Part shown: positions 774-24,359 of the stretch, one piece after another
Numbering within the stretch: position 1 is the first letter of the stretch
How the letters are laid out: each line of letters begins with the position of its first letter
Assembly: GCF_052425735.1 (NCBI RefSeq)
Contig: NC_135761.1
Coordinates: forward strand, 33,914,001-33,978,000
Length of the DNA stretch: 64,000 nt
Reading direction: 5' to 3'
Source: Oculina patagonica
Taxonomy: Eukaryota
Position numbers and translations under genes: made by a program
The notes under the pieces: model-generated
What the model was told of the DNA's origin: nothing
Database searches by the model: none
What the model saw: only the letters and a program-made list of their open reading frames with translations

Positions 774-880
774 TTGAATTGGATGAGTCATTGAATTGAA
801 TATGCATTGAATATGCATTGAATTGAATGAGTGATTGAATTGAATATGCATTGAATTGAATGAGTGATTGAATTGAATTA
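774..880. repeat. (TGAAT)n-like degenerate microsatellite
   Basis: Repeated tgaattgaatatgcattgaattgaatgag units. Confidence 0.8.
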
Positions 881-1437
881 ACAGTAACAGTAAATCTTTA
901 TTGTGCCTTACACTCCAAAGGGAGGTATTGGTCTAGTTACAATAAAGGTGTTATAACAACTATGCTAACAAATTACTTAATAACAAACACTTGAATTACA
1001 ATGCAGACGTTTATGATAATAATTGAACTATTAATTATACAACTATTTATTGATATAACTTTCAATTTAAAATTTCTTTTCTTTTTTGAAAAATGAGAAA
1101 GATATATTTAGCTATGATTCTAGAGGTAGCATTATTATCTAATTTAAGAAGGTACATAATTTTTTCATGATCAGTTAAACCTACAAAGCGAGGATCAGTT
1201 TGGGACACGATGAAATGAAGCTCTTTTCTAACATCATTATACCCTTTGCAATACATTAAAAAATGCTGTTCGTCCTCTATGTGGTTTTCCTTACATACCA
1301 AGCACTTTCGTTCTTCAACTGGTGTGGGTGCTCCTGCATTTTCATATTTTCCAGTTTGTATGCGAAGGGAATGTACCCCTAATCGTAGTTTAGTAATACG
1401 CTGGATTTTTAACTGTAGTGAGATACTCTTTTGGTAA
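879..1437 (-). mobile_element. 5'-truncated LINE 3' end (CR1/L2-group-like ORF2 C-terminus)
   Basis: The minus strand reads ITKLRLGVHSLRIQTGKY...ERKCLVCKENHIEDEQHFLMYC..Y...R, a typical LINE ORF2 C-terminal Cys/His region, with stop at 1062. An AATAAA signal and a (TTACTG)n tail follow near 879-902. Confidence 0.7.
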
Positions 1438-2394
1438 TCCCATTTAACTTCTTTGTGAGTGAATTTTTCTCTACAGCTAGAAAGTCATATGCAATTGTGC
1501 ATTAAAATCCCTGAATGTATGTATGTAATAAACTGCCATCAGGCAGGGGGCCAGAAGAAAAAAATAACTTCTTTCTTTCATTCTTACCACTAAAAAAAAA
1601 AGAAATAAAAAAACACCTGGTCGCAGGTAAAATTTTTAACAAAAGCGAGTATGTTCAAAAGGAACAAGAATCTGGGAACTTCAGACATGTGTTCAAAAAT
1701 AGGCACACCAGTATATCAGATTGCTTATTAAAATTATTGTGAGTTCATAAGCTGGTTATCACAAAATCATTAAAAACTTGGAAGTAATTGAACATTGTCA
1801 ATTATTCCCTTGGCATACACTCCCAAACCAACATGTTGGGCCTGTTCGTAGGATAAATATAAGGCACTGGAGAAACACTGTCAACTTAGGAAATGGTCAC
1901 TATCAGAGGTCAACTTACTGTGCTTGCTAGAGAACAGGGAAGAATGTGTCTTTGGTTGCTCTTGTTCTCCCTCTGGAGCCTTACTTGCCTTGAGTACCTG
2001 CTATTTCGATGGCATGTTGTGGCTTTCATGCTCAAGGACAGAGTTGGTTTTGCTTTTCCTTGTTGGATTCTCTTACACTTGTCTAGTGCTGTACGTTGAA
2101 TCTTAGTTAACTTCCAATGATTTTGACCATGCATGCATGGCTATAAAAGCCTACTTAATCTCAAAGTTGGAACTTCCAACTGAGAATACAGTAACTCGCC
2201 TTTAAAAAATTCGAAGAGTGAGGAGTTAATTTTAATCTGAAGGCTTACCAAGAAAGTGGGTTATTGCAAGGGGTAATTTTAATAATTATAGTTAATTTTA
2301 ATAATTATTTGGTTGAGTTAACCATCCTTTTTTCCCAAGATTTTACTCTCAAGGCATTTAACGCAAGTGCAGCAACCACTCAGTCAAACATCAA

Positions 2395-3219
2395 AATATC
2401 ACTCAGGAACAAACTGTCTGCCCTTAAGGATGGTGAAAAGTGATCTACATTATTAATTATTTAAACTGTTTGTCGAAACTTTTTTACCTTTTTCAAGCTT
2501 TTAGATTTTTGTCATGAACAAATTGTCTGTCCTACGGGACAGCTAGCAGTGAAAAGGACATTATGTTCAAGAACCACTGAGTCAGGCATCAAGATATCAC
2601 TCAGGAACAAACTGTCTGCCTTTAAGGATGGTGAAAAGTGATCTACATTATAAATTATTTAAACTGTTTGTCAAAACTTTTTACTTTTTTACAAGCTTTT
2701 AGATTTTTATCATGAACAAATTGTCTGTCCTACGGGACAGCTAGCAGTGAAAAGGACATTATGTTCAGGAACCACTGAGTCAGGCATCAAGATATCACTC
2801 AGGAACAAACTGTCTGCCTTTAAGGATGGTAAAAAGTGATCTACATTATAAATTATTTAAACTGTTTGTCAAAACTTTTTACTTTTTTAAAAGCTTTTAG
2901 ATTTTTGTCATGAACAAATTGTCTGTCCTAGGGGACAGCTAGCAGTGAAAAGGACATTATGTCCAGAAAACACTGAGTCAGGCATCAAGATATCACTCAG
3001 GAACAAACTGTCTGTCCTAAAGGTAAAGGATGGTGAAAAGTGACATTTGAATTATACTGTTTGTCAGAACTTTTTTACTGATTCAAGCTTTTAGATTTTG
3101 TCAGGAACAAATTGGCCGCCCTTAAGGGTGGTGAAAAGTGACATTTTATTCATACTGTTTCACAGAACTTTTTCACTAATTGAAGCTATTAGATTTCCGT
3201 CAGAAACAAATTGTCTGTC
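2395..3219. repeat. Tandem satellite-like array, left part (198-bp and ~99-bp units)
   Basis: actcaggaacaaactgtctg recurs at 2401, 2599, 2797 and 2995 (period 198). ggtgaaaagtgac then recurs at ~98-bp spacing (3032, 3130). Confidence 0.9.
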
Positions 3220-3350
3220 TGTGGAGTCCTGGGACTAGTAGAGTCGTCACGTGACAAGAAGGCCGTGTACGATCGAGTTAGTTGAGTTCTTGCCATGTGT
3301 GTGTTGTAACTCGGAGTTTACACACTGTTTTCTTTATTAAATACACCACA
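3220..3350 (+). repeat. 5' LTR
   Basis: tgtggagtcc...atacaccaca, identical by eye to 9753-9883; contains ATTAAA near its end. Confidence 0.97.
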
Positions 3351-3354
3351 TTTT

Positions 3355-3366
3355 TGGCGACGAGGA
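3355..3366 (+). promoter_or_regulatory. Primer binding site (probably tRNA-Ser GCT)
   Basis: TGGCGACGAGGA lies 4 nt after the LTR. It is complementary to the 3' end (..TCCTCGTCGCCA) of metazoan tRNA-Ser(GCT), as recalled. Confidence 0.75.
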
Positions 3367-3422
3367 ACGTGATCGAATACCACGACCAGGTAGACTAGAG
3401 TGAAGCGAAGTCTACACGGAAA

Positions 3423-6400
3423 ATGCCTACATTTGGGAAATTAGACGAATACAACGAAACGGAAGATTGGCGCCATTACACTGAGCGTGTAAATCACTTT
3501 TTTGAAGCAAACGAGATAACCGATCCGGACAAAAAAAGATCCATTTTCCTGGTTAGCGTGGGAGCCAAAACCTACAAGCTTATACGAAGTCTGGTCGCTC
3601 CGGAGGACCCGAAGACCAAAACCTATGAGGATTTAGCGAAACTCGCCCAGGAACATTTCATGCCAAAGCCTTCCGCTATTGTACAACGATTCAAGTTTAA
3701 CACTCGCACTCAACAAACAGGTGAGACAATTGCCATGTTTTTAGCTGAGTTGAGGCACCTGACCGAACACTGTGAATTTGGGGCAACATTAGATGAAATG
3801 CTACGTGATCGGCTTGTGTGTGGTGTTCACGACATCAGAATACAGCGTCGTTTACTAGCCGAACCGAAATTAACCCTGAAGCGAGCGCTCGATCTGGCTC
3901 TCGGCATTGAGGCCGCGGATAAGGATGCCTCGGAGATACAAAAGGGGGACTCTCAGGAAGGGGATACTCCGCTCAACAAAGTCGATTTTAAAGTGGAAAA
4001 GGGTGGCGAAGTTAATTGTTATCGCTGTGGCGGTAATCACTACCCCAAAAGCTGTCATTTTAAGGATGCGAAATGTTATGCTTTTGGAAAGTTGGGTCAC
4101 CTATCTCGAGTGTGCCAGAACAAAAAGAAAGGGAAACTACCACCTCCTAGTACTAATAAGAAGTCAGACACCCCACAGGATACCCATCTCCTAGAGGGGG
4201 GAGAGGAGGCAATGGGGAGAGAACAGGGTGTGGGTGCATATTCTTTGTTTACCCTTGGCGGTAAACAACCTTTGCCATACAAAGTACAGCTGAGTGTTGG
4301 TGGGCAAGCACTAGAAATGGAAGTTGACACAGGGGCTTCATTGTCAGTGATAAGTGAAGGCACCTACAAACACCTTGTCTCACAAAACGGGGCACCGCCA
4401 CTGGAGAAATCAGGAATTGTCCTTCGTACATACACTGGGGAAGAGGTCAAGCCCGAAGGGGTGTGTACAGTTGATGTACATTATGAAGGGGGCGAATACT
4501 CCTTGCCATTGTTAGTTGTAAGTGGAGAAGGCCCAGCTCTGTTGGGGAGGAATTGGCTGGAAGAAATTAAGCTAAATTGGCCAAGGATTAAGCAACTTAC
4601 TTCGCATGACAAGCGACTTGGAGAGATTTTGCAGAAACATGCACAGCTATTTGGGGAGGGTCTGGGGACCCTACAGGGGACAAAGGCCAAGATCCATGTG
4701 GACCCCACAGCCACCCCCATTTTCCATAAAGCCAGACCAGTGCCATATGCTCTCAGGGAGAAAATTGAGCAAGACCTGGAAAGACTTGAGAAGGCAGGAA
4801 CCATTGAACCCGTTCAATATTCCGAGTGGGCCACACCCATTGTCCCAGTTATGAAAAGTGATGGCACAGTAAGAGTCTGTGGAGATTACAAGCTTACCGT
4901 CAATAAGGTCTCGAAATTGGATGGCTACCCTATCCCCAAGCTCGATGATCTATACACAAAGTTGGCTGGGGGTCAAACGTTTACTGAGTTAGACTTGAGC
5001 CATGCTTATGAGCAGATGCTTGTGGATGAGAACTCAAGGGAGTTTTTGACAATTAACACCCATAAAGGCCTTTTTAGATATAACCGCCTTCCGTATGGGG
5101 TCTCTTCAGCGCCCGGCATCTTCCAGAGAACCATGGAGGGTTTGCTGCAAGGAATACCTTCGACAGGAGTCTTGCTAGATAATATCCTCATCACAGGGCC
5201 CAGCACGGAAGAGCACCTAGACTACATCGAGAAAGTTTTGGGACGCCTTTCTGATGCCGGCTTGCGGCTCAAAGCTGAAAAGTGCCAATTTATGAAGCCC
5301 GTTTTGGAGTGCCTGGGGCACCGCATTGACGCAGAAGGGTTCCATCCAGTTGAAGCAAAGGTGAAGGCCATCAAGGAGGCCCCAACCCCAACCAATCCCT
5401 CTGAGCTGAAGTCCTTTCTAGGGATGCTTAACTTCTATGGCAAGTTCATGCCCGACCTATCGTCCACCCTGGAGCCACTGCACGAGCTTCTGAGGAAAGA
5501 TATCTGTTGGAAATGGGGTACAGAGCAACAAGAGGCGTTTGATAAGGCCAAGAATCGACTTCAATCATCAGATGTACTCGTACATTATGATCCTGAGAAA
5601 GAGTTGGTGGTATCTTGTGATGCTTCACCCTATGGTATTGGGGCAGTGCTGGCCCATGTTATGAAAGATGGCTCAGAGAAACCAGTTGCATATGCCTCAC
5701 GAACACTCTCCACAGCAGAGAGGAACTATGGCCACCTAGATAAAGAGGCACTAGCTGTAGTTTTTGCCGTGAAGAAGTTCCATCAATTTCTTTTTGGACG
5801 TCATTTCAAGGTCTACACAGATCACAAACCACTTTTGGGGCTGGTTAACCCTGAACGAGCCACACCTCTAATGGCTTCAAGTAGGATGCAGCGATGGGCA
5901 TTGACTTTGCTTGCGTATGAGTATGAGCTTATTTATCGCCCTGGTGAAGAGAATGGAAACGCAGACGCCCTCAGTCGTCTACCCCTTCCAGTTGCTCCAG
6001 AGACCACGCCCGTCCCAGGGGACATTATACACCTTCTAGAGACCATCAACACCAGCCCAGTGGATGCCACTAAAGTGAAGTTGTGGACAGCCCGTGATCC
6101 AGTACTTTCTCAAGTTCATCCGTCCTTCACGGATGGCCCATGGCAGTCGAAGAAGAAGCCCTGAAGCCTTATTTTGCTAGAAGAGAGGAATTGAGTGTAC
6201 ATGCTGGCTGCCTACTTTGGGGATCCCGGGTCGTGATACCCCCACAGGGGAGAGAGGAAGTGTTGAACATACTACATGAGTCCCACCCCGGTATTGTTAG
6301 AATGAAAAGCCTAGCTAGGAGCTATGTGTGGTGGCCGAAAATGGACTCATGTTTGGAGGAAAAGGTGAAAAGCTGTGTTACCTGCCAAAGCCACCAAAAG

Positions 6401-6896
6401 AAGCCACCCAGTTCACCGTTGCACCCTTGGGAATGGCCCGGCCGCCCTTGGTCTCGAGTACATGTAGATTATGCCGGTCCTTTTATGGGCAAGATGTTTC
6501 TCCTAATTATTGATGCGCATTCTAAATGGATGGATATCCATTGTGTGAATTCTGCCACTTCCAGCGCAACCATCGAAAAGCTGAGGACAACCTTCGCTTC
6601 ACACGGCCTACCAGAGATTGTAGTGTCAGACAATGGGTCCAATTTTGTTAGCAGCGAGTTCAAGTCATTTCTACAGAAAAATGGCATCAAGCACATTACC
6701 TCCTCTGTCGAGACCAAGTTAGCTCGGTTCCTATTAAGTTATCGTATTACCCCCCAAAGCACCACGGGTGAGTCTCCTGCTCAGTTACGCTGGGGACGAA
6801 GTCTGAGGTCACATCTCGATCTGCTGCGACCAGATGTAGCGGCAAGGGTACATGCAGCACAATCAAGACAGAAGATACAGCATGATCAGCATAGCC
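3423..6896 (+). pseudogene. Gypsy gag-pol polyprotein (gag, CCHC knuckles, protease, RT, RNase H, integrase), disrupted
   Basis: Motifs: CYRCGGNHYPKSC knuckle; protease VDTGA; RT DLSHAY and PYGVSSAP; RNase H DASPYGIGAVL and TDHKPL; integrase HHCC, HVDYAGP and VSDNG. Lesions: RT motif reads LLDN instead of YxDD (5172-5183); frameshift near 6120; in-frame deletion near 6703 removing the usual 'PYHP.SNG.AER' segment; LINE insertion after 6896. The integrase C-terminus resumes at 9252-9640. Confidence 0.92.
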
Positions 6897-9200
6897 TCAA
6901 CATTATGAACTTTGGTCCAAGTTTCCTTAACTGGATTCGCACATTCTATAGCAATATTTCTAGTTGCGTTATCAACAATGGTCACTCTTCAGAGTTTTTT
7001 TCTCTACAAAGAGGAGTGAGACAAGGGTGTCCTCTTTCGGGACTGCTCTTTGTTCTCGCTTTAGAACCACTCGCACACCAGATAAGAATCACTGATTCTA
7101 TCAAAGGTCTCGAAAACGGGAATAAGATCACTAAACTTAGTTTGTATGCAGACGACACCACCGCTTTCATCCGCGACGACTCTTCCGCAGCGTCTCTATT
7201 TGCTCTCCTTGATCAGTTTAGCAATCTATCGGGTCTGAAAATTAATAGATCAAAAACTGAGGGTCTGTGGCTAGGTCGTTGGAAAAGCAGATTAGGAAAA
7301 GACGAGCCTTTTGGCATTTCGTGGCCGAAAGAATATGTCACTGCACTTGGAATATGTTTCCCTTATTGCGCGAATGTTGGAATCAAACTAAACTTTGATG
7401 AGAAACTTGCCAAACTTAAAAAAGTTCTTAACATCTGGTGCAAAAGACATCTAACCATCTTAGGCAGAATAGCCATCGTAAAGAATTTAGCAATCGCCAA
7501 ACTTGTTTATTGCTGCTCCGTCTTAAACGTTCCTGCCGAATTCATAAAAGAGGTCAACAGCATCATCTTCTCCTTTATCTGGAATTTCAAACCTGATAAA
7601 ATTAAGAGAAAAACGTTGATTGGCCCAGTCTGCAAAGGCGGTCTAAATATGATTAACTTTGAAGATGTTGTAAAATCCCTCAAGATTACCTGGGTTAATC
7701 GTTATTGCGAATCGGCTGGCAGTCACTGGTGTGCCCGCCTTGATTCCTTATTAAGTAAAGTCGGAGGAGCTTTTCTATTTCAATGCAATTTCGACCTAAA
7801 ATTTCTGAACCTCAACAATTTACCACCTTTCTATAAAAATATTCTTAAGGTGTGGCAAGAATTGAATTACAAGGAACCGCTTAATGCAAATGAATTCAAA
7901 CAAGAACTTTTATGGAACAACCGGTTCATAAAGACCAATGGTAAAACGGTGTATTATAAAACATGGGTAAATCAAGACATCTTAAAAATAAGTGATCTCC
8001 TCGACAATCACGACCAATTCCTCTCTTTCGAAAATTTTAAGCGCAAATTCAGCGTTCGATGCACTTTCCTCGACTACGCCGGAGTTCTCGCTGCTATCCC
8101 CAAAGCGTGGAAAAGAAAAATCACGTGCAACAGTGTCGGTGGTGTTAGCGAACTCCCAAAGGCTGATTCAAATAGCGATGATATCGTCTCCGCAAAAAAA
8201 GCCCGTTTGATGCTTGCGGAAAGGTCCTTCTCTCCCCCTACCGTCGAAATCACTCTAAGAAATCAAGTGACAAACTTAAAGGATGTCTACGAACTTCCAT
8301 TTAGAATCACCGTTGAAAATAGATTAAGAAGCTTTCAGCATAAACTCATACATAACATCATACCTACCAATCTCTCACTCTATAGAATGAAAATAAAAGA
8401 GTCACCACATTGCGAACACTGCCACTGTAAAAATGAGACACTTCTCCATAGGTTTTGTGAGTGCCCCGAAGTCAAGCTATTTTGGAAAGACGTCATAGAA
8501 TGGTGGAATACAAATCGCTCTGACAATTTCAATCCTACTTGTTCGGAAATTCTTTATGGATACAGACCTGAGAACACCAGCTATCATGCTTTCAATCACT
8601 ATCTTCTTATTGCTAAATATCATCTATATCTCGCAAGAAATCAGTCAGAGACTCCTAGCATAAAGGTCTTTCTTGCCTTACTGGAAAGCAAAATTAAATG
8701 TGAAAGACAAATCGCTATTAAAAACTCTAGCTATAAAAAGTATGAAACAAAGTGGACCACTCTCTGCATAAGCGATGCGGTAGCTTTCTTTCCACTGTTT
8801 AAGCAAAAGAGCCAGGTTTAGGTGCATTTTCTTTGTCTGTTATATTTATCCTTTATCATTTTAGTTACATTAGATCTGTTGTTATAGTAAGTAGCTGTAT
8901 TAGTTTAGTGACAATTTCAGTTTTTTTTGTAAGTGCAGTGTAAGTTCTGTCAATTAGCTCTTGTGCCATGTATAGCTTTATAGTATTTTAGTCTCTTTTG
9001 TATTTAAAAAATATATATTTCACTGTAAGTAGTAAGCATCGCATTGTAAGTAGTGTAAGTGTTGTAAATAGTATACAGTGTCGAATTGTAAGAAGCGCAA
9101 GTGTCGTATTGTATTGTGTACAGCTTAAGTATTTGTACAATAAGTAGTGAGTAGTGGGCATACTTTTTTTGTATTTTTGTAAGTGATGTGCTTTTGTGTG

Positions 9201-9752: not shown

Positions 9753-9883
9753 TGTGGAGTCCTGGGACTAGTAGAGTCGTCACGTGACAAGAAGGCCGTG
9801 TACGATCGAGTTAGTTGAGTTCTTGCCATGTGTGTGTTGTAACTCGGAGTTTACACACTGTTTTCTTTATTAAATACACCACA
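9753..9883 (+). repeat. 3' LTR
   Basis: Identical to 3220-3350 and followed by the TSD CTGTC. Confidence 0.97.
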
Positions 9884-10570
9884 CTGTCCTAATTTAAGGG
9901 TGGTGAAAAGTGACATCATATTGATACTGTTTGTCAGAACCTTTTACTGATTCAAGCTTTTCAATTTTTGTCAAGAACAAATTGCCTTTCCTAAAGGATG
10001 GTGAAAAGTGACATTATATTTAAACTGTTTGTCAGAACTCTTTTACTCATTCAAGGATTAGGATTTTTGTCAGGAACAAAAAAAGGACATAATGTTCAGG
10101 AACCACTTAGTCAGGCATCAAGATATCACTCAGGAGCAAACTGTCTACCCTTAAGGGTAGTGAAAAGTGATCTACATTATAAATTATTTAAAAACTGTTT
10201 GTTAAAACTTTTTTACCGTTTCAAGCTTTTAGATTTTTGTCAGAAACAACTTGTCTGTCCTAAAGGATGGTGAAAAGTGACATCAAATTCAATACTGTTT
10301 GTCAGAACTTTTTTACTGATTCAAGCTTTTAGATTTTTGTCAGAAACAAATTGTCTGCCCTAAAGGGTGGTGAAAACTGACATTATTTAAACTGTTTGTC
10401 AGAACGTTTTTAGTGATTCAAGCTTTTAGATTTCTGTCAGAAACAAATTCTCTGTGAAAATTAAGTGACATTATATTATTCATACTGTTTGTCAGCTAGA
10501 TCTTTGATGAATTATAAAGAAAATTATGTGACATTACATATGTTAATACTGTACGTTTGTCAGAACTATT
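9884..10570. repeat. Tandem satellite-like array, right part
   Basis: Same ggtgaaaagtgac...caagcttttagatttttgtcag unit as 2395-3219, continuing in register across the LTR element and decaying toward 10570. Confidence 0.88.
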
Positions 10571-12297: not shown

Positions 12298-12490
12298 TTA
12301 GTCAACAGGGGTGAAATGGTGAGGGCGCAGCGTTGTCAAAAACGCAATGTCTTGTAATTTTCGTACTCTGGACAGAGCGACGTACCCCAGACCCACAGGC
12401 ACATGTTCGCAATCCATCCACACTACTAGTTTTTCTATTGTCGCCCCTTCGCTCTTAGATATGGTCATGGCGTAGGCTGGTACCATAAGT
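12298..12490 (-). pseudogene. Pif1/RecD-family SF1 helicase C-terminal fragment (Helitron-like)
   Basis: PAYAMTISKSEGATI (motif V) and GLGYVALSRVR (motif VI). Confidence 0.8.
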
Positions 12491-13230
12491 AGCTGGTGCT
12501 TACCGGTCGTAAAATGAGAAAAACTTTCCCACCAAAACTAAACTTGAGCGCGCTCGCCAATAGCGCGATGTTTGCCGACGAGTACTGAAACATTCACACT
12601 GAAACAATGGAGTCGGAGTTTCCAAATTTTTCGCTAAATTTGGATTTTGAAAATTTAGGGAATGAAACTCCAAACAAGCGAATAAAAAAATGCGATGAGA
12701 GGACTTGATAAAAGTGTTGAAGGCCAAAAAAGTATCAATACAAGCAGGTCAACACATTTTGCACTACCTGTCTGGATTTGGCTAAATTTGGGTACGGTAA
12801 ATACCTAATCGTACCTTTTTGGTACGCTTCAGCGGCATATCAGGCTCGTTTGGTCTCGCCATGGGTATTTTGGCTCGACCAAACTCGCCAAAATACGAAC
12901 CATGGCTCGACCAAACTCGCCTGATATGCTGCCGAAGCGTACCAAAAAGGTACGATTAGGTATAAGTATTGTTCCATGAAGATTTTATGAAAATACACAA
13001 TTTAAACTATCTGGTATATGTCATATGGAATATTACTTGAGAAAGTTCCTTGACAAGCACCCCTGAGGGAGACCAGTGCTGGAATAAAGGGCTGTGGAGA
13101 ATCAAGAGCTGGACTGGCAAGGTAGAGTTGGCTGAGGTGGGCTGGGTGGCTAGGCCTGCATGGTTATAGTGGAGCTTCCAGCAGCCCAAAGGGCCGCAGA
13201 GCAGAGCCCCATACCCATAGAAAATTAACA

Positions 13231-13713
13231 TATGAAGTGTAATGTCCGCCAAAATTATACTTGGTATTACGCTAGTGGAACCTGCAGTTTTGTAATTGCG
13301 TTCCGATATCTTGCAATTGGAACCTGCTCTTTTGTTATCGGGTTCTGGTATCTTGCTACTGGAACCTGCTCTTTTCTTTCGTCTTCTGGTGTTTTGCTAC
13401 AGAATCCTGCTTTTTTGTTAATGCGATATTGCATTTTGTTTCTTTGTTCTTGCATTCTGACATTTTGCCATTGGATCATTACAACCTGCACTTTTGTCAT
13501 TTCGTTCTGACATCTTGCTATTGAAAACTTCTCTTTTGTTATTGCTTTGTGACATTTTGCCATTAGAAAATTACGACCTGCACTTTTGTTGTTGTGTTCT
13601 TCTACTTTGATGGTGTTAATTTCATTTTGGTGTTTTGACAAGGTAACATGCAGTTCGGCATGGCACTCAGTGACGCGTTTTTGGACACAATAATTTATTT
13701 CCCGCCAAAATGT
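13231..13713 (+). repeat. Left terminal inverted repeat (483 bp)
   Basis: Reverse complement of 23730-24212; internal ~42-bp subrepeats. Confidence 0.97.
13698..13709. promoter_or_regulatory. E2F-type site TTTCCCGCCAAA at the inner edge of the left TIR
   Basis: Matches the TTTSSCGC consensus with an overlapping TTTGGCGG on the other strand. It lies ~90 bp upstream of the E3 ATG and is mirrored at 23734-23745. Confidence 0.5.
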
Positions 13714-13801
13714 AAGTATTTTAATTTATGCAAAAATCTCGCGAAATGATTGGTTGAAAAGTACTCGTCGGCGAAAAGGCCATGTGATCAATGTGATCAA
13801 C

Positions 13802-16800
13802 ATGGCGGACCAAGAAGACTCGCAAACACCATTTGACCATCACAGGGCCGTTTCTTTGCTCGTAGAAGCAACCCAGTTTCTCAGGGAATACTCAGGCGGC
13901 AGTGCTGTGTCGACTCAAAGCCGTAGCGGCGAAAATTCCGAGATTCAGCCTACAGGATCACGCCGGAATGAACCGAACAGCAGCCAAAGATTACAGGCGA
14001 ATCACTCAAGGTTTCCTCACACAACAACAACAACTTCGAGCGTATTTGCAGACCAGAACAGGCAGGGAAACGAAGATAACGTGCTTGGCGGAAGTTTGGC
14101 ACGAAACAGTGCTGCAAATGGAAGAGTACTTGATAATTTTCGAAGTCTGTTTTCACCCTATGGTCGCGAAACGTCGTCAACTAGCTCATCAAGTGTACAA
14201 TCGCCATCCGCCAGTAAGAGAAGGAAACGTAACACATTGTTCTTTAAAAGAGAAACTTGGACTCACGAATTTTTCTGCTTGGCAGATAAAGATCAAATGG
14301 TAGCACCCAGCAGATCTTTAAAGATCCAACTTCAGGAGGCTGGCTTAGGCCGCAAAAAAGTATGCCTTAATGGTAGAGCTGACGCAACGGAGGTGAAGAC
14401 GACTCTAGAAGAAAGCTATCCGAAGTTAAAAGAGGGTGGAGGATTTGAGATACTAAGACGTGGCCCAAGCCCTAGCGAACTGACCTTAATTCCACCACCA
14501 CCATCGGGATATACTGTAAAATTCTTACGCGACTCCGCAGGATTGGGGCAAGCAATCGCGTTTGTGAGACCATTGCAATGCAACCTCAACCGGGAAGCCA
14601 TCAAACCTGTTCAGTCAGACCACAGCCAGGTGGGTGTTCAAATAATTATATTATTATATTCACTTCGGAAATTTTTAAAAGGCTACAGAGGACTGGCAAT
14701 AGAGATGAAAATTCTGTTTTAATGCACCAAATGATCCTTCCCCCTCATTTCTTTGAGCCATTTGAATACACCTACGGCACATTTGTTATCTTTGGGACAT
14801 TTTAGGCAAAAGGATCTGTGACATCACCCTATATAACCAATATCTTTCAATGTATCTTTGTATGTGTCTCTGAAACAGGATTCTGGCAGTGTTCCAAAAG
14901 TTGCTTGTATCAACTGTAGTCTTGAGATTCCAGTAACTCTTGTCAGACAACATTTGGCTGTTTGCTGCAATGATGATGACTTGTGAGTACAATTCACATG
15001 TAATAGTAATGAAAAATACAGTTTAGGTTGTTTTGAAAAGTGATCAAAGTTTTGTAATTTTCTTGTAAATGTATTTAGCAGTATGAAAAGTCTATCCAAT
15101 TGTTCTATCTCATACTTTTGTTGTTAGGTTACATGGTCTCACTCCTTCTAGAGTCAAAAATGGGTACTGAGGGACCTAACTGCACCTAAATACATGTAGT
15201 AACAATTCCTAAATTACAATTCCTTTTACCATCGTGGCAGAATTTTGAAAAGTGTAAATGTTTGTTTCTCTAGACAACTTGAAATGCCTACAAATATTTC
15301 AGTTGACAGAAACAGGCAGTTTGTGCTGATTTCTAATCTTATCCTTTGGTAGGCCAGACATTGCTTGTAGTGATGGAACCACAAGTACAGAATCCATAAC
15401 TCAAGTGAGGACTTAATTCATTATACACCTGTAGACTGAATTTTAGTTATACAGGATGAATGTACAGTCTAGCACACAACCTACATCTATTTCCTTTACC
15501 ATCTACATGTTTATCATTTAAGGGACCGGTCATAAAGTACAGGGGGGGGGGTGGGCTATGAAATTTTTTCTTTTTAAGTACTGATTTTCAGTGGCCCACC
15601 CCCGAATTATTTGACAAAATTGGGGCGGCCCACCCCTGGAGTGGCACAGAAAAACCAAGTGGCCCACCCCCCCCCCCCCAACCAAAATCAGTAATGTAGA
15701 TAGGTACATAGGGAACATTGGCTTACCACTTTAGTCAGAATCTCCAAAAACTTTTCGAGATCAAAAGTTTGAATCATGTCAGTGTTAGAATCCTGAAATG
15801 CTATTTTAGACATTCTGCTAGAATTTTTGTACTGTAACGGTCGTAGATGTAGCCTCTGCAGTTTAAGGGGACACTAATAGTTGGTGGTTTTGAGTTAATG
15901 ATGTTTTTACAAAGCAAAGTCAGGAGCCCATGGCAAAGTAAAGGGGTCCGGGGGAATGCTCCCCTGGGAAAATTTTGATTTTAGAAACACAGAAATACTA
16001 TTTTAGGCATTCCGGTAGAATATTTGTGCCATTGTAGATGTAGTCTCTGCAGTTTAAAGGGATAACAATAGTTTGTGTTTTTGAGTTACGATGTTTGGTA
16101 CATGGCAGATTAGGGGGTCTGGGGGGATGTTCCCCCAGGAAAATTTAAATTTTTAACACCTCAGAAACGCTGTTTTAGGCATCCTGATAGAATGTTTGCG
16201 CTTTTATAGATGCTGTTTAATGAATAATTTAACCATGACCCACCCCTAATGCAGTGCATTTTTTTTCCTGACCCACCCTTTTTGACAAGTTGAAAAATAG
16301 TGGCCCACCCCCAATTTTTCATAGCCCACCCCCCCCCTGTACTTTATGACCGGTCCCTAATACAACATGGCAATATACTTTTCATGGGATGGGTAGATTT
16401 TATATTCACGTCTATCAGTGTGCTAAATATGCTGTTTGCATGAGCCATGAGTGATTTTCAATTGGGAAATTTGATATTATTAAATCATTGTGAAACTGTT
16501 ATATTTATTGGACTTCATGTATTTGTCCAATTATATCAATGAGTGTAATTTTATTAGTCAAATGTTGTGCTTTTAGGCCCCTGTACTTTTAAGTTCTCCA
16601 TCCAGTTCCACTGGTGATGTGCATGCCACTTTCAATAACAATTTGAGTGGTGAAGAATTGAGTAGTTCCACTGCACACCCACTGTCACTTGTAAGTTTGT
16701 CTGTGGCAAAGTGCTACTCTTAGTGATAAAATTAATCTTTTCCCAAAAACAAACTACACTGTACATGGAATTAACAGGTATTTTTCTAAATGGTAACAAA

Positions 16801-19800
16801 AAATATACTATTACTAGTACATAATTATATGCCAGTAGTCTATTACCTGTAGGCATTGTTATATGTATTTTCTGCTACTAAGTACATGTTAGTTCAGTTA
16901 AAATTGCAGAGAAATGTGATCTCCAAATGCTACTGGAGTTGCTTTCATTATGTCTAGTACAACTGTCTCAGTTCATTTGTAAGGATTTATTGCGTTCTCG
17001 TGTGTAAATGATATGACAGTGTAGTTGATTGTATTTGGCAAGCTTTGGGGCAAAACTGGCTACATGCCATATCCAAGATGTATGTGTAATCATACTGTAT
17101 GTTTAGAATATATTTTTGTGATGAAGTAGACCTCATATATATGATATTGTTTTCATCTACTGTAGGACCCTGCTGCTGTAGCAGAGCTGCAGTACTTATT
17201 CCCAGATAAGGATGAAGATTCTCTGAGAGATGTACTTAGCATATGCGAGGGAAACTACAGTTTAGCAGCTTCCAGGCTTGTGAACTGGGATGGCAAGTGA
17301 CATATAATTACCTTAAATAAACAGACCTGGTTTTCTTTTCAGGGAAATGGGTTCATTATGGTTTAAATACAACTTATTTTTTCTTATTTTTTCCATATAA
17401 TGAATCATGGTCTCTTGTACTTGCTAGGAATGCGATAATGTCACAACAACTTATTTTCCAATTTATGTTCTATTATCTGTCATTTGGTGGCCTACGGGAG
17501 GTTAAAAACAAAGAAAATTTCAAACTTTTAGCTCTAAAAGTGTTCATGGTCGCTTACGAGATGTGGTCGTTTACAAGAGGTTCAAAATATAGTTATTTGA
17601 CTAGGAAACTTTTGGTACTTTGGAAAATTAAGAGGTGGTCGCTTATGACAGGTTGCAACCAGAGGTTCGACTATATTTATGTTACATCCACGTTCTCTCT
17701 CCTCTATAGAAAACCAGGCAAGCTCATCCTGTTATCTGGTAGATGAGAGTAAGGATGATGGCAATGACAGTGACTTGATGCAATCTGCATTCAGTTTGGA
17801 TTATTCAAGTAATTTAGGTATTGGATTTATTTGTAGATGTATGTGCCTCATTTCTTTACCCAAGTGTACAACAGGTCAGATATGTCCATGATTGAATGCT
17901 AATGAGATGCACGTTTCTCATGGCAGGCATCACAAAGTGTCCTCATTAAAATGTTCACCAAAACACACCAAAATCTGTCAAATATGAAGTTATATGGAAA
18001 TGCCAAATAACACAGTCAAACATGAAGTACTCATTAAACAATACTTGCATTCAATCCTGGACCAGAGATATCGCAAAGGGCCAGCTGCCAGCTAATTTCA
18101 CCGGCTGAAAGAGATTTCACATGAAAAAACACGAAATTTCACATGAAAACAAGGGCTTAGGTAAACTTTAAAAGATTCCAGGGCCAGAAAAGCCAGTTGG
18201 GCTTGTTGATGAACCGGCTTAGTGTTTTCTTAGCCTGTAAAGCCTGTAAAGACGGTGGTCTGTGTTCCATTAATGTGTAGTCTTTGCTTTGTTTGTAGCT
18301 TAATATGCTAAATAATGCTTAGTATCTGTAAATCCACCCTCCTTGAAATAACATAACTTAGGCATGCTATTAAATAAATAAAAGACATTATCACTATTTT
18401 ACATTAGTGTATTGGAGGTTTGGTGAAGTGAAACTGAACTGCCTATACTTTTATTCATATTTCTTTAGATGAAGATCTACAAAGTATCATGGGGAAGCAC
18501 AGACGACAACTGAACTCTCAAGAATGCAACAGATTAACTGTAGACCGGGAACAATTCTGGGAAGACTGTGTGGTGTTCTTTAAAAACCCAAAGTTCAATC
18601 CAAGATATCCCTTGAGAATCAGATTTGCAGGTGAAGCTGGGCTTGATGCTGGAGGACTTCGTCGTGAATTTGGCTCTCTCTTAATCAGTAAATTGTTCTC
18701 CTCAGAAGCCAAGTTATTTGAGGGTAGTGATGGTAGAAAAGTTCCTGTATGCAATGCTGATGCTGTACATTCAAACCTTTTCCACTTAGCTGGAAAGATT
18801 TGTGCCTACCTGTTGTCCCACTTAGACCTTGGTGTATCTTGCCTTAGTCCAGTGATCTATTCGTACATTGCAACTGATGAAGTCCATGAAGCATCAAAGC
18901 AATGCACCCTGGAAGATATACCAGACTACGACTTGCGTAAATTCATTGAAGAGGTATATATGTGGATGCAACACACATGAATGAGTTTTCTTTTGGATTC
19001 TATAAGTTTTTTTGGACATTTTAACGTGAGTGCAGTAAACAAGTAAACCTGTATAATTGGTCTCCAGTACAGTGCAAATATTGGGGATTGTTTGGGCTTA
19101 ATTTGCAATTGGTTAAATTGCAATTACAACTGCAATGATCACATATTCATTTCCAAAGTTCACATCATCTTCATATGTTTGTAACTTATTTACATTTTGA
19201 ACCTTATTGGAAACTGCTAGTTGGTGGTGGCCCCAGCACAAATCAAAGTTTCGGGGCCCTCTTACATGACTGTTATGATTTAGTTCCCCCCTAAGAATAA
19301 CACAAAAAACTTTTCAACAGTACGTAGCTGGGCTCAGAATTAAAAAGACGGTTTCCTTGTGGCAAGTTCAGAAAGCAGTAAGGAAAAATTTTCAGCTACT
19401 CTTGGAGGACGTTGACCAAGGAAAACTTACAAGGATACCTTCTCAATTTTTAGGATTTATATTGACAGTTCACATTAATCCTGCTAGAAAGATCGTATTT
19501 TAAATTAACTTGTATTTGTGTCAATTTTTTTTTTGATTGCATGTGTTTAACACTGGTATATTGCTTTGATTAATTGAGGATATCTTTGAACATGTAGGTG
19601 AATAATGCGAGCTCTAATGACGAACTTCAGAAAGTCTTGGATGGGAATGATCAAACAGACGCACTGCTAGCAGGAGGATGGGTGCGTGTCTTAACGGTGG
19701 AAAATAAAGGCTTGGCAATGTGGCAGTTGATGATACATGAAGTTATTTTGAAGAGAAAAGTAGCACTTGACCAGTTTTGTGCAGGTTTAAAGGTTCTGGG

Positions 19801-20681
19801 TGTCCGCGAATTGTTGATGGCTCACAGCAAAATCATGGAACCCTACTTTGTTGCAAGGGAGCAGACTCCTCTCAGTGCCGATGCTGTTCTTGGACTGTTT
19901 GAAGACATCTTACAGCAACAGTCAGATGTCAAAAAGGAGCAAGCCCGGCAGCATCTGATCAACGCTATAACAGATCTGGATGTTGAAGGTGCAGTTGTGA
20001 TAGAATAATTTATATTCTATTTGATTTGTTCTATTTTAATCAGTATCTTTATTCACACAACCCCACAAGCTTTATGCTTTAACTATCTTGTTTTTTAATA
20101 CTTTTCTATAAAAATGCCCATTGCTTTACAGGAGGCACTGCCTCATTTGGTTTGTGCTCACTGGGATTGATATAACAGTGATGTGGGATGAAAATAACAT
20201 CAATTATCACGTCCTTGATGTTAAGTTACTGAGCATTTGATGGGGAAGGAAGATAGTAAAAGCACCTACATCCCTCCCTGTTTATAGAATTTTAAATAGG
20301 CCATTTCCGAGTTACCCTTTGCCTCTGTTTCAATCATTTGAATGGTTTTGCACATAGACTCATTTTGAAACAGAGGCTAAAGGTAACTCGGAAATGGCCC
20401 ATTTAATGTTAAAAAATGTCTTGTTTCCTTTCCTTGATGCAGATTCCAAGACCGATCTTCAACACTTTCTGCACTTCTTGACAGGCCTGCAGAAAATTCC
20501 TCCTTTGGGACTAGAAACAAATCTAACAATCACTTATAAGGAGGACACGTCCAAGACTCTTCATGCGGACGTTTGTGCGTACAACTTGAATGTACCTACA
20601 GTCCACGATACCTATGGAGAATTCCAGCATTATTTTCTTCTGACCTGCCGAGTTGGTTATGTTGGCTTTGGCCTAGTTTAG
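13802..20681 (+). CDS. HECT-domain E3 ubiquitin ligase (G2E3-like HECT) with UBZ-like finger and CUE domain, ~815 aa, 9 exons
   Basis: Exons predicted by hand: 13802-14629, 14879-14982, 15353-15404, 16577-16690, 17166-17292 (GC donor), 17710-17817, 18469-18953, 19598-19988, 20443-20681. Phases are compatible; total 2448 nt with no internal stop. HECT motifs: RIRFAGEAGLDAGGLRREF, QFCAGLKVLGV, FLHFLTGLQKIPPLG, ADVCAYNLNVP (catalytic Cys) and C-terminal GFGLV* (-4 Phe). Confidence 0.88.
15522..16357. mobile_element. PIF/Harbinger-type MITE in E3 intron 3
   Basis: TIR GGGACCGGTCATAAAGTACAGGGGGGGG..TGGGCTATGAAA at both ends; 3-bp TSD TAA at 15519-15521 and 16358-16360. Confidence 0.9.
17405..17673. 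mobile_element. Decayed MITE fragment (TA-type end) in E3 intron 5
   Basis: Repeated ggtcgcttacga/gtggtcg motifs ending in gaggttcgactata; only one end is visible. Confidence 0.45.
20295..20403. mobile_element. Short palindromic MITE in E3 intron 8
   Basis: ggccatttccgagttaccctttgcctctgtttcaa ... ttgaaacagaggctaaaggtaactcggaaatggcc forms an inverted repeat. Confidence 0.8.
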
Positions 20682-21185
20682 CGTCACTTGTAATACCGCT
20701 TACTAATAATACACAGGTGTTTTGGCCTTGGTATGAATGTTTGAAAGGATCTACTAAATTAGCCACTGTTAAAAAATATTCATGTTGTGTTTCATTACGT
20801 AACAGATCGGGTACTTCCTATCATACAATCCTGTTGAGTTTTAACTTCATTCCCTTGTTGATGTTATTGATAGTAATGTCTACGATGACTTTGTTATTGA
20901 TACATGTTACGAAGTCTACACTAGGAGTTCATGGTTTCGTTCATTTCAGTTTGCATCGATTTAGTTACATGTTATTTCAGTGGAGTGCAGGACTGTGATT
21001 TTGATATTTAAGTTGTCATTTTTAATACCTTATATCAATATTCTTGGTACACGGAGCATTGAGAAAGAGATCTAATAGTTCCTGTTTGGCACTATCCCAA
21101 TATGTTAATCACAGAGAAGCTTACAACATTGTTACTCAACGTTATGATGATCATGGAAAAAATTTGTCAAAGTTTATACCTGACA

Positions 21186-21232
21186 ATTAAAGTTGTTTTT
21201 ATTACATTGTTAAACATCTAATTTCCTTTATT
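21186..21232. terminator. Facing poly(A) signals between the convergent genes
   Basis: ATTAAA on + at 21186-21191; AATAAA on - at 21198-21203 and 21227-21232. Confidence 0.45.
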
Positions 21233-21264
21233 CTATCTCAGTAACACCTTCACTGTTATCAAAG

Positions 21265-22710
21265 TCAGACGTTCCTCCATTGCTGCATGAATGACAGTGC
21301 ATTCAAGTAAATATCGACACCATAATACATGGAAGGTTCAGCAAGATCCACTTGCCTGGCAAGTGCCTGTATGCCTTGGGAGTCTAAAGCACAAAACGTT
21401 TCTGGAACCTGAACAATGACGCTGTCATCTTCGACTATTCCATCCCACTCTTCGGATGGGGCAGGTCCGTCCCAGTCGATGCCATATGCATTTCGATCCA
21501 CCTGCAAAAAATGTTTACTGCGTGTAATTATGTTTCTTTGGTTGCTTAGGCTAACGTGTTATCGCACACATACAGTGTAAGTAAAGACCCCTCCTCCACA
21601 AACACACACACCACTACACATGTGTAGATATCCCCAGGGATCCAAATTTTGCATTATACGAACTTGATTAATATATCATCAGAAATTGAATACCTGGCCA
21701 TTGAACTCTTCTGCAACTCTTCCAGTGGAATTTGACAGCATTCCTCTAATCCATAGTTGTTCTGGTGATTTGTTATGCTCAGTACTAAGTGGTCCCCTGT
21801 TGTGACCCTCGGCAAACAGGGACAGGTTTCTGTTAATACGGGGTAAGAACACATAGATGGAGTGCAGCCAAATGAAGTTCGTTTGTGATGTCTAAGACTC
21901 CGCATGCTTCCATATAGTAAAACAAATGGTAAAAAACAAATATACACCCAGAGAACATGTCCCTCCATAACCTCTCTATTCTCTGGTTGTGGACACTTCT
22001 CCCCGTAATGTGGCTTCCACGATCCGGCCCTCGTAGTGGGTGCGATAGCATGAACCATGCTACGTCAGTATTTTCTTTACCTTTGTCGGAACGTACTCTA
22101 GATGGAAGGCCGAACTTTTCGACTGCTGACTGGAATGCATCAAAAACAGTGCTGGCCCTGTTGTTTGTTGCACATCGTAGAAATACTATCATTCGAGAGA
22201 AACCGTCGATCCCGCCGTGTATGACAAACCTCCACCTGAAGAGTAACATGCCAAACACGTTAATCAGAAATTGTTAAGATAGCATCAAGAATACTAAAGG
22301 TAGCTTTAAAAGTTGGTTGTTACTGGAAAGCGTAAATAGGATTTTTTGTTCTACCTCTACCCCTGCCTTAGGGTTAGGTTTAGGGTTAGAAAAACAGCCC
22401 TCCTTCACCGTGACGTTGTAATCCGTTACCCGTTTTCCTAACAGACCTGACAAATACTTGCCTTTAGGAGAGGCAGAGGCTAGAAGGGAATTTCGGTAAA
22501 AAAAAAGAAATCAGTTCAAACTTACTTAAATGATTTAGATTTGTTCTCTCTAAAGGACATAACCCTCGTTTTCACTGATAGATAATGACCGTCTCAATTT
22601 CAAAAGGAATACCCCCCCCCCCCGATCTGGCCCCATCGTAGGGCATTTGCTCATGGGGCAATTTCACAAGGCAATTTCTCATGGGGTTATTATTATTATA
22701 ATTATAATTA

Positions 22711-22742
<32 letters not shown>

Positions 22743-22787
22743 GAATAAGACTAAATTTTGATAAACATCGCTTATTTTTATTGTCAA

Positions 22788-22841
<54 letters not shown>

Positions 22842-23711
22842 GGGCTTTTGTTTACAGGAGAGAACGATCATTCCTCAGGGAATGAACGTTCTCTCCTCAG
22901 ACTGAATCGCCGCAGAGGTAACAATCAATTTACACGCACAGTAACTAGATCAAACGAGAAGAGTAAACCGAAGTTCTTCCAATGTCATGCAATGTAAACA
23001 GTGTAATAATTACCTGATTAATTTGTGGTTTCCATCTATGTGCCATAAGGACAGAGGTCCTTGGACATAGTAAGATCTCCTTTGTATTAACCTTAACTCC
23101 AATGCACGTAGAAGCACACCTTCAGGATTTACTCGACGCATACACTCTCGAATCCTAGACTGCTGAATACGGAGGCCACGACTCAGCAACAGCCCACTCA
23201 TTCGTTTGCAGCCAACGTTTGGAAAGTCAGCTATAATATCGTTGACTATGGCATCTAATTCGGCATCTGACAAACGAGCAAAGTTTGCTCTCACACTGAG
23301 CCCAAACTCGCTTAAACGCCTTTCTAATGTTCGCTTGCTGACACCAAACAGTAGAGCCATTTCTTCAACAGTGAATCTTTTCTCTGTGAGGAATTCTAGC
23401 TGTTCTTTGGGTATATCAAACGCTGGTCTACCCCTTTCACCATTAAATGTCTTCTGAGCCTGACACGATGTTGACAGGCTTCCACTACTCGATCTATAAA
23501 GACAATCTTTAGCTTCTCTTAAGCAGCGAACTATTCTCGCGTCAATAATTCCAGTGTCAAGGTATCTTACCGTTGTGTGATAGAGCCAATCAATACGATA
23601 GTATAAGCTGTCGATTCTGTCTGAATCAAGTATTTCTGAAGCCAACTCCCTTATGATAGAAACGAGCGAGTTATTTAGAAGACGTCTTATCATTGCCTGT
23701 TCGTCCGCCAT
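21265..23711 (-). CDS. IS3/integrase-like DDE transposase, 3 exons, ~491 aa once a single 1-bp frameshift is corrected
   Basis: Exons 23711-23014, 22235-21694 and 21501-21265 (GT-AG, compatible phases). HTH-like region ([20 protein letters not shown]), then [53 protein letters not shown] (D,D,E) and C-terminal YGIDWDGP. One extra base at ~21856-21857 breaks [10 protein letters not shown]. Confidence 0.88.
22686..22841. repeat. Two (ATT)n microsatellites in transposase intron 1
   Basis: ATT tracts at ~22686-22742 and ~22788-22841. Confidence 0.95.
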
Positions 23712-23729
23712 CTTGGACTCGAGACATAC

Positions 23730-24212
23730 ACATTTTGGCGGGAAATAAATTATTGTGTCCAAAAACGCGTCACTGAGTGCCATGCCGAACTGCATGTTAC
23801 CTTGTCAAAACACCAAAATGAAATTAACACCATCAAAGTAGAAGAACACAACAACAAAAGTGCAGGTCGTAATTTTCTAATGGCAAAATGTCACAAAGCA
23901 ATAACAAAAGAGAAGTTTTCAATAGCAAGATGTCAGAACGAAATGACAAAAGTGCAGGTTGTAATGATCCAATGGCAAAATGTCAGAATGCAAGAACAAA
24001 GAAACAAAATGCAATATCGCATTAACAAAAAAGCAGGATTCTGTAGCAAAACACCAGAAGACGAAAGAAAAGAGCAGGTTCCAGTAGCAAGATACCAGAA
24101 CCCGATAACAAAAGAGCAGGTTCCAATTGCAAGATATCGGAACGCAATTACAAAACTGCAGGTTCCACTAGCGTAATACCAAGTATAATTTTGGCGGACA
24201 TCACACTTCATA
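23730..24212 (-). repeat. Right terminal inverted repeat (483 bp)
   Basis: Reverse complement of 13231-13713. Confidence 0.97.
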
Positions 24213-24359
24213 TTAACAGACCCATGCTTTTGGTTACTCATGGTCATCAGGGCTAGCAGTATGGTTCGCGGGTATGTGCACCCTAGCGACGACATCGCTC
24301 CAACATGACAGCTCCCATACTCCATACTGGGATGGTTAGGCTGGGCTGGAATGGCTGAA

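Follow-up and report, generated by a model that had tools for sequence, protein, structure and literature searches.

Does a transposon in a coral genome carry a ubiquitin ligase that can read the mark it writes? The question arises from a stretch of 64,000 nucleotides (nt) of the Oculina patagonica genome (assembly GCF_052425735.1, contig NC_135761.1, positions 33,914,001 to 33,978,000; here called the window, with positions counted from its first base), which has about 38% G+C and zero N. An initial annotation, made from the letters of the window, had spliced by hand a HECT-type ligase with a possible ubiquitin-like fold, a UBZ finger and a CUE domain hidden in small exons. Our preferred reading, to which we give a probability of roughly 70%, is that the + strand gene of a DNA transposon in this window is an expressed, nine-exon gene for an 815-residue HECT ligase with a beta-grasp domain, a C2HC zinc finger and a CUE-type module, the modules and their role being as proposed below. 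From sequence and structure models, the predicted order of parts is a low-complexity N-terminus, the beta-grasp domain, the C2HC finger, Ser/Thr-rich linkers, the CUE-type bundle, an acidic linker and the HECT domain (Table 1).

The gene model was built from splice signals and reading phases. Nine + strand exons encode 815 residues without an internal stop when the last acceptor is taken at 20443, and each exon border carries a proper splice signal, with reading phases that fit across the junctions. We tested the model over positions 14450-20449 with Logan contigs from four public runs. Seven introns were exactly removed in contigs of two to four runs, from up to three studies. One contig of 1672 nt (run X5) joined exons 1-6 with introns 2-5 spliced and intron 1 kept, and another of 1889 nt joined exons 6, 7 and 8 and extended past exon 8. 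Because contig joints remove the introns on both sides of exons 2 and 5, these two exons are spliced into RNA, as the initial annotation had supposed. Its peptides were also found where it had placed them (CINCSLEIPVTLVRQHLAVC at 14906-14965, frame 2; VAELQ...ASRL at 17178-17279, frame 3; TWTHEFFCL at 14255-14281; FVRPLQ at 14561-14578), and its length of 815 residues was reproduced with acceptor 20443 and seven junctions seen, the junction of exons 8 and 9 being without RNA confirmation. Its exon 5 proved too short, since the contigs extend that exon to 17292 rather than 17279. The ligase gene is expressed and correctly spliced.

Two candidate structures were rejected on the same evidence. 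An open frame at 19279-19500 was ruled out as an exon by an RNA joint from 18953 to 19598, and an in-frame pairing of an exon-5 donor at 17279/17280 with an acceptor at 17718 was ruled out by contigs that splice from the GC donor at 17293 to the acceptor at 17709/17710. The intron 1 kept in the X5 contig, which brings a stop after exon 1, represents either intron retention or an incompletely processed transcript.

Comparison with four other copies of the element (L005, L006, L010 and L011) separated exons from introns. The exons are 92-96% identical and fully alignable, versus 67-90% for the introns, which can often be aligned only in part; exons 2 and 5 show the same conservation between copies as the remaining exons.

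Exon 2 is predicted from its sequence to encode a conserved beta-beta-alpha C2HC finger of the RAD18-UBZ4/TRAF class. The UBZ4-type spacing reported in the initial annotation, C-x2-C-x11-H-x3-C, was confirmed together with the Ala at the usual Asp position, and an alignment of 14 family fingers left the four zinc ligands as the sole invariant positions. The pattern comes after the exon-1 domain (N-domain) in many distinct family members, cichlid and mormyrid proteins included. Because the ligands are invariant in 14 members and exons 2 and 5 are conserved above their flanking introns, the signal goes beyond chance. Searched singly against the PDB, the finger had as its best match the RAD18 UBZ of 2mre, a structure that includes ubiquitin; the E-value of 0.1 is not significant. 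The family profile matched TRAFD1/FLN29 (2d9k, E=2e-4), the RAD18 UBZ (2mre, E=3e-4; 5vf0, E=1.7e-3) and TRAF4 (E=8e-3), the RAD18 match being a single stretch over 26 of 36 profile positions that takes in residues ahead of the finger and the 'IP' motif. A diverged element, L009, has two fingers of this spacing instead of one (L009:11894 and L009:12654), the second sharing one open frame with a UBA-like module and the start of HECT. That the finger is a ubiquitin-binding UBZ is plausible from these sequence matches.

For the exon-1 block, the initial annotation had suggested a beta-grasp or ubiquitin-like fold, and structure prediction agreed. An AlphaFold2 model from a 76-sequence alignment reached a predicted local distance difference test score (pLDDT) of 89.6 and a predicted template-modelling score (pTM) of 0.80. 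In an exhaustive VIA-align search, the model matched the TBK1 ubiquitin-like domain (ULD) at Z 8.1, with a root-mean-square deviation (rmsd) of 2.5-2.9 A over 78-84 residues, followed by Ufm1 (Z 7.0) and the IKK1 ULD (Z 6.7). The best 50 rows were all beta-grasp folds with VIA-align and likewise with Foldseek, where they included the Ras-binding domains of Rgl2 and RalGDS, SAP18, UBX, RAWUL, the USP7 UBLs and FERM F1. The models therefore support a beta-grasp (ubiquitin-like) fold for this block, an assignment that is silent on what the domain does. No Pfam family, ubiquitin, UBX and RA included, was matched by any of the 76 members, and the family profile found no PDB sequence. Among 1.84 billion representatives searched, the family comprises 1448 at 50% identity (E<=1e-3), nearly all of them short single-exon open reading frames (ORFs) from coral-sample metagenomes and assemblies, together with teleost gene models.

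Exon 5 is supported by its model as a CUE-type three-helix bundle of the UBA fold. Among 24,736 Pfam models, CUE (PF02845) was its best match (E=0.0018, 18.4 bits, positions 2-39 of 42, thus 38 of the 42 with the Phe-Pro loop included); next came DMA, which we take to be a relative in the UBA clan. Among 177,635 PDB sequences, the top two were the CUE domains of Tollip and SMARCAD1 (E 0.25-0.29). The AlphaFold2 model (pLDDT 93.1) has three helices at residues 2-11, 17-26 and 31-40, and Foldseek superposed it on Tollip CUE (template-modelling (TM) score 0.88, rmsd 0.7 A, probability 1.00), SMARCAD1 CUE1 (TM 0.88), EDD UBA, CUEDC1 CUE and gp78 CUE, nearly all rows being CUE or UBA domains at rmsd 0.7-1.0 A. 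CUE domains contact ubiquitin through a Met-Phe-Pro loop and a di-leucine in helix 3; exon 5 aligns Leu-Phe-Pro with the Met-Phe-Pro of Tollip and Leu-Val with its Leu-Leu. The CUE of the initial annotation stands as to predicted fold and best matches, with a Pfam score under the gathering cut-off.

The exon-5 module itself was found by phmmer and tblastn only in copies at least about 80% identical. In open frames read by eye, two diverged elements have UBA-fold-like modules in the same place, between finger and HECT: L007:15108-15233 aligns lengthwise with exon 5, with Phe-Leu where exon 5 has Phe-Pro, and L009:12855-12986 matches Pfam UBA_8 (E=0.005) and UBA_4 (E=0.007). A mixed profile of the CUE- and UBA-like modules found only a non-significant NUB1 UBA match in the PDB.

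The HECT domain is intact in sequence, complete and with its catalytic Cys present. With phmmer, exon 7 matched the HECT domains of TOM1, SMURF1 and HUWE1 in the PDB (E 4e-5 to 3e-4), and exon 9 alone scored 25.2 bits against Pfam HECT (PF00632), versus a cut-off of 23.9. Alignment of exon 9 with the HUWE1 and AREL1 C-lobes placed Cys781 (of 815) on the catalytic Cys, in agreement with the position of HECT catalytic cysteines about 35 residues before the C-terminus. A teleost homologue (P0178) matched HECT at 63.5 bits over profile positions 26-305. The HECT assignment of the initial annotation is upheld by these matches to both lobes, as is its contrast with canonical G2E3, no Pfam match to PHD or RING fingers having been found in any exon.

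Several observations weigh against our reading, some bearing on the gene model and others on its modules. That the runs are RNA is no more than a guess, and the contigs might derive from sister copies. The joint from 19988 to 20443 (exons 8-9), at the edge of the aligned stretch, is unconfirmed by RNA, and alternative acceptors for exon 9 at 20374 and 20383 would give 838 and 835 residues, against 815 with 20443. The residue before the catalytic Cys is Val in this copy, whereas L010, L011 and L012 have Thr. For the exon-1 model, Foldseek returned nothing at E<=1e-3 (best E 0.018). The CUE score of exon 5 lies under the curated cut-off of 21.1 bits, and the Foldseek E-values of its 42-residue model are all >0.2. 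Teleost relatives retain beta-grasp, finger and HECT and lack the CUE module, which is therefore not essential to the family. Some CUE domains bind proteins other than ubiquitin, as seen for SMARCAD1 CUE1, solved with KAP1 (6h3a). In the finger, the UBZ4 Asp after His-Leu is Ala in this copy and Asp in 3 of the 14 aligned fingers (L007, P0136 and P0138), and the fingers of TRAFD1 and the TRAF proteins match the family profile as well as that of RAD18 does. RAD18 and WRNIP1 require the Asp of H-L-D-x-C in their UBZ4 fingers to bind ubiquitin.

These last two points make the UBZ label insecure: the profile matches TRAFD1 and TRAF4 as well as RAD18, and the UBZ4 Asp is not conserved. Of the UBZ finger first proposed, the RAD18 spacing and the RAD18 profile match remain, set against equal TRAFD1/TRAF4 matches and the missing Asp. 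It is accordingly possible, if on the doubtful side, that the tie to ubiquitin biology is limited to the HECT and CUE parts. The finger would then be a TRAF/TRAFD1-type protein-interaction (or nucleic-acid-binding) module and the beta-grasp domain a docking domain of Ras-association, TBK1-ULD or UBX-like type; 'reader-writer' would overstate the case, and substrates would be chosen through protein-protein contacts, for example with the transposase. The best finger profile match is to TRAFD1/FLN29, with TRAF4 also found, and the top fold matches of the exon-1 model include docking modules (the Ras-binding domains of Rgl2 and RalGDS, the ubiquitin-like domains of TBK1 and IKK). In Pfam, the family fingers gave weak matches to zf_C2HC_14, XAF1_C, zf-C2HC_2 and TRAFD1-XIAF1_ZnF, and none of the matches listed names UBZ or RAD18. 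Against this, the RAD18 UBZ score practically equals that of TRAFD1 and comes from one stretch over 26 of 36 profile positions, H-x-D-x-C is retained in three sublineages (L007, P0136/P0138, and L012, whose finger lies outside the 14-finger alignment and has Asp two residues after His), and a ubiquitin-binding fold beside the finger is retained in diverged copies.

We regard it as improbable that exon 5 is a generic three-helix linker, resembling CUE and UBA domains through chance of size and composition, with no role in ubiquitin biology. Every exon-5 sequence score is below threshold, short helical bundles have many structural look-alikes and Foldseek gave no E-value under 0.2, and the module is missing in teleost relatives. 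Yet CUE was the best of all the Pfam models, over nearly the full profile and with the Phe-Pro loop included, the top two PDB sequences were CUE domains, and the structural matches were almost exclusively CUE or UBA at rmsd 0.7-1.0 A. Two diverged lineages (L007 and L009) also hold a UBA-like module at the same place.

We next consider the element that carries the ligase. An inverted repeat pair at 13230-13713 and 23730-24213, 484 nt long and 100% complementary, encloses about 11 kb. The element limits were placed one base inside the repeat limits, giving 13231-24212 and the end sequences TTAACA/TATGAAG...CTTCATA/TTAACA. An initial reading of a 4-bp target-site duplication (TSD), TAAC, was dropped once the end had been moved one base inward, which yielded the 6-bp TTAACA with TA..TA termini. 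Elements of like layout, each with a 6-bp TSD of its own, were seen at L005, L011 and a cichlid locus (L014). IS3EU and GingerRoot transposons are marked by 6-bp TSDs, TA..TA termini, terminal inverted repeats (TIRs) and an integrase-like DDE transposase (PMC6839031, PMC10045372). The Oculina element has a TSD of that length, the TA..TA termini and an integrase-like DDE transposase; we class it, from TSD, termini and the Pfam class of the transposase, as an IS3EU/GingerRoot-like DNA transposon. Its TIRs of 484 nt differ from the 100-150 nt of GingerRoot. The element is a young cut-and-paste transposon.

The second gene of the element, on the - strand, encodes a transposase with Pfam matches to rva_4 (E=6e-57) and rve (E=2e-8) and a helix-turn-helix (HTH) upstream of them. 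It is convergent with the ligase gene, and all of the examined relatives that were long enough to show it (L005, L009, L010, L011 and L012/L013) had the same convergent pair of ligase and rva_4 transposase. In the cichlid Simochromis diagramma (L014), a gene for a 726-residue protein with N-domain, finger and HECT is followed by an rva_4 gene, and the two are enclosed by 99% identical inverted repeats of about 340 nt with TA..TA termini and TSD CAGGAG. The ligase-transposase partnership is constant across several coral-sample assemblies and a cichlid.

Also improbable is that the ligase is a passenger, a G2E3-like gene that the transposon took up from a host and carries with no role in transposition, perhaps already decaying in this copy: captured gene fragments are frequent in GingerRoot elements (PMC6839031), many copies are broken (exon-1 stops in L005 and L011, exons 5-7 deleted in L012/L013) and in this copy Ala replaces the Asp of the finger and Val the Thr ahead of the catalytic Cys, yet the gene here is complete, free of stops, transcribed and spliced, its exons are conserved above its introns, the cichlid element and elements whose N-domains are only 45-70% identical still have the two genes in the same order and convergent, and 1448 N-domain representatives at 50% identity are what a transposon-borne gene would be expected to leave.

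A role in transposition is the most likely one for the ligase, given that it accompanies the transposase in both corals and fish. In the mechanism that we favor, the CUE module, perhaps with the finger, would bind ubiquitin or an already ubiquitinated protein. HECT would then add or extend ubiquitin on the bound target or a neighbor, with CUE, and possibly the finger, directing its activity or making it processive. The CUE of gp78 and the UBA domains of HUWE1 and UBR5 assist their ligases in a way that serves as a model for this role. The beta-grasp domain may offer a docking surface, either to a partner or, in a form of self-inhibition, to the CUE module of the same ligase; ubiquitin-like domains are self-inhibitory in Parkin and HOIL-1. 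Candidate substrates are the transposase itself, chromatin, and repair or restriction factors present where the element is cut out or inserted. Guidance of integration to ubiquitinated chromatin, as first suggested, is one possibility among several; the initial annotation had also thought of docking at ubiquitinated repair sites and of chain amplification. A stronger version seems to us rather unlikely: that an ancient two-gene transposon, maintained from cnidarians to teleosts, has in the ligase an indispensable second subunit, which would use CUE and finger to recognize ubiquitin marks at the broken donor or target and then write on the transposase, histones or repair factors, so that transposition depends on it. 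If true, this would be the first transposon shown to have its own ubiquitin 'reader-writer'.

Known ligases share parts of this layout. Some teleost family members bear automatic NCBI names of 'G2/M phase-specific E3 ubiquitin-protein ligase-like' or 'uncharacterized protein', the sole link of the family to G2E3. A C-terminal HECT is common to the Oculina ligase and G2E3-like ligases. Canonical G2E3 has PHD/RING-like fingers N-terminal to HECT; compared with G2E3 by its general description, the Oculina ligase has the predicted beta-grasp, C2HC finger and CUE-type module in their place. RAD18 has an identical finger spacing, a similar lead-in and the same 'IP' after the second Cys, whereas its catalytic domain is RING rather than HECT and its HLDxC Asp is Ala in the Oculina finger and variable in the family. 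With the CUE domains of Tollip, SMARCAD1, CUEDC1 and gp78/AMFR, the exon-5 model shares the three-helix bundle and the Phe-Pro loop after helix 1 (TM 0.75-0.88, rmsd 0.7-1.2 A), while differing in Leu-Phe-Pro for the usual Met-Phe-Pro, in Leu-Val for the Leu-Leu of Tollip and in the attached HECT. We know of no described case of CUE and HECT in one protein. HOIL-1 and Parkin combine a ubiquitin-like domain with an RBR ligase, HOIL-1 having in addition a ubiquitin-binding NZF finger, and HUWE1 and UBR5 combine HECT with UBA. All four share a design logic with the Oculina ligase, in which a ubiquitin-like fold, ubiquitin-binding modules or both precede a ligase domain that forms a thioester; in HOIL-1 and Parkin the finger and catalytic folds are different, and the Oculina ligase is transposon-encoded.

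Proteases that remove ubiquitin or SUMO are carried by mobile elements such as Ginger1, some Mutator elements and Helitrons. Ginger1 transposases carry OTU or Ulp1 protease domains, and a role of the ubiquitin pathway in transposition has been proposed (PMC2836005). In Ginger1 the protease is fused to the transposase, whereas the Oculina element would supply a ubiquitin ligase from a separate gene. No mention of a HECT ligase in such elements was found in PMC6839031, PMC10045372 or PMC2836005, or in full-text literature searches, and what is new here is that an IS3EU/GingerRoot-type transposon is predicted to encode a HECT ligase equipped with modules of ubiquitin-binding type. A conserved, transposon-borne enzyme that adds ubiquitin and has its own ubiquitin-binding modules would show that the other half of the pathway has been recruited, and would offer a concrete way to test how cut-and-paste elements cope with chromatin, repair or host defense. 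The analysis also defines a large unnamed family of predicted beta-grasp domains (the 1448 representatives above), and accounts for many gene models that coral and fish annotations call 'G2E3-like' or 'uncharacterized': they are genes of transposons.

Table 1. Features of the transposon and its two genes, in window positions
Feature	Position	Strand	Details
Whole transposon	13231-24212		5'-TA...TA-3' termini; TSD TTAACA on both sides
Target-site duplication	13225-13230, 24213-24218		TTAACA, 6 bp
Terminal inverted repeats	13231-13713, 23730-24212
Transposase	21265-23795	-	Integrase-type (rva_4/rve), N-terminal HTH, several exons; Pfam
Exon 1	13802-14629	+	aa 1-276; ATG 13802; donor CAG/GTGGGT; Ser/Thr-rich N-terminal region, then family-specific domain
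Predicted beta-grasp domain	14252-14578	+	aa ~151-259, within exon 1; TWTHEFFCL...FVRPLQ
Intron 1	14630-14878	+	GT-AG; 2 runs (X1, X4)
Exon 2	14879-14982	+	aa 277-311; C2HC finger; RNA joints on both sides
Predicted C2HC finger	14906-14965	+	aa 286-305; C-x2-C-x11-H-x3-C; CINCSLEIPVTLVRQHLAVC
Intron 2	14983-15352	+	GT-AG; 4 runs
Exon 3	15353-15404	+	52 nt; Ser/Thr-rich linker
Intron 3	15405-16576	+	GT-AG; 2 runs (X1, X5), 2 studies
Exon 4	16577-16690	+	114 nt; Ser-rich linker
Intron 4	16691-17165	+	GT-AG; 2 runs (X1, X5), 2 studies
Exon 5	17166-17292	+	aa 367-408; predicted CUE-type three-helix bundle; ends ...ASRLVNWD
Predicted CUE-type module	within 17166-17292	+	DPAAVAELQYLFPDKDEDSLRDVLSICEGNYSLAASRLVNWD; Pfam, PDB sequences, AlphaFold2, Foldseek
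Intron 5	17293-17709	+	GC-AG, donor G/GCAAGT; 2 runs (X1, X5), 2 studies
Exon 6	17710-17817	+	108 nt; acidic linker
Intron 6	17818-18468	+	GT-AG; 2 runs (X1, X5), 2 studies
Exon 7	18469-18953	+	HECT start, N-lobe
Intron 7	18954-19597	+	GT-AG; 2 runs (X1, X5), 2 studies
Exon 8	19598-19988	+	HECT middle
Exon 9	20443-20681	+	HECT C-lobe; Cys781 20574-20576; stop 20679-20681; acceptor inferred

Some minor features lie within the element. The inner end of the TIRs (13639-13713 / 23730-23795) contains the start of the transposase reading frame, MQFGMALSDAFLDTIIYFPPKC. Because the mirror image of this start sits just upstream of the ligase gene, both genes are preceded by identical sequence. Contig depth was 800-3500 at 17850-18249 and 20250-20449, versus 2-60 elsewhere in the ligase gene; both intron pieces belong to short repeats of very high abundance. 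The second contains a pair of 42-nt inverted repeats (20292-20406) that looks like a miniature inverted-repeat transposable element. About 840 nt of intron 3 (15520-16359) are missing from L005 and L010; this stretch contains units repeated within it, seen as contig joints that 'go back 169', and is probably a nested short-repeat insertion.

Among the related copies, L012 and L013 are ligase-transposase elements without ligase exons 5-7, about 96 kb apart on one contig. Each lies between TNF-domain genes within near-perfect inverted repeats of 1.4-1.6 kb, a setting that suggests a large segmental duplication including the element. Upstream of the elements L001-L003, L005 and L006 (for example at L005:5172-6484) there is a common pair of ORFs with a weak match to phage integrase (tyrosine recombinase). 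One of these loci also has a DUF3504 match, which hints at a Crypton/DIRS-like neighbor or a favored insertion context.

Elsewhere in the window, translations read by eye point to a Gypsy-type long terminal repeat (LTR) retrotransposon polyprotein (gag, protease, reverse transcriptase, RNase H and integrase) at 3423-8821, its integrase part broken by a non-LTR reverse-transcriptase ORF. Tandem repeats of about 99/198 nt, also identified by eye, lie on both sides of it (2354-3243 and 9861-10480). A short - strand ORF at 12298-12486 resembles, again by eye only, the C-terminal end of a PIF1/Helitron-type helicase.

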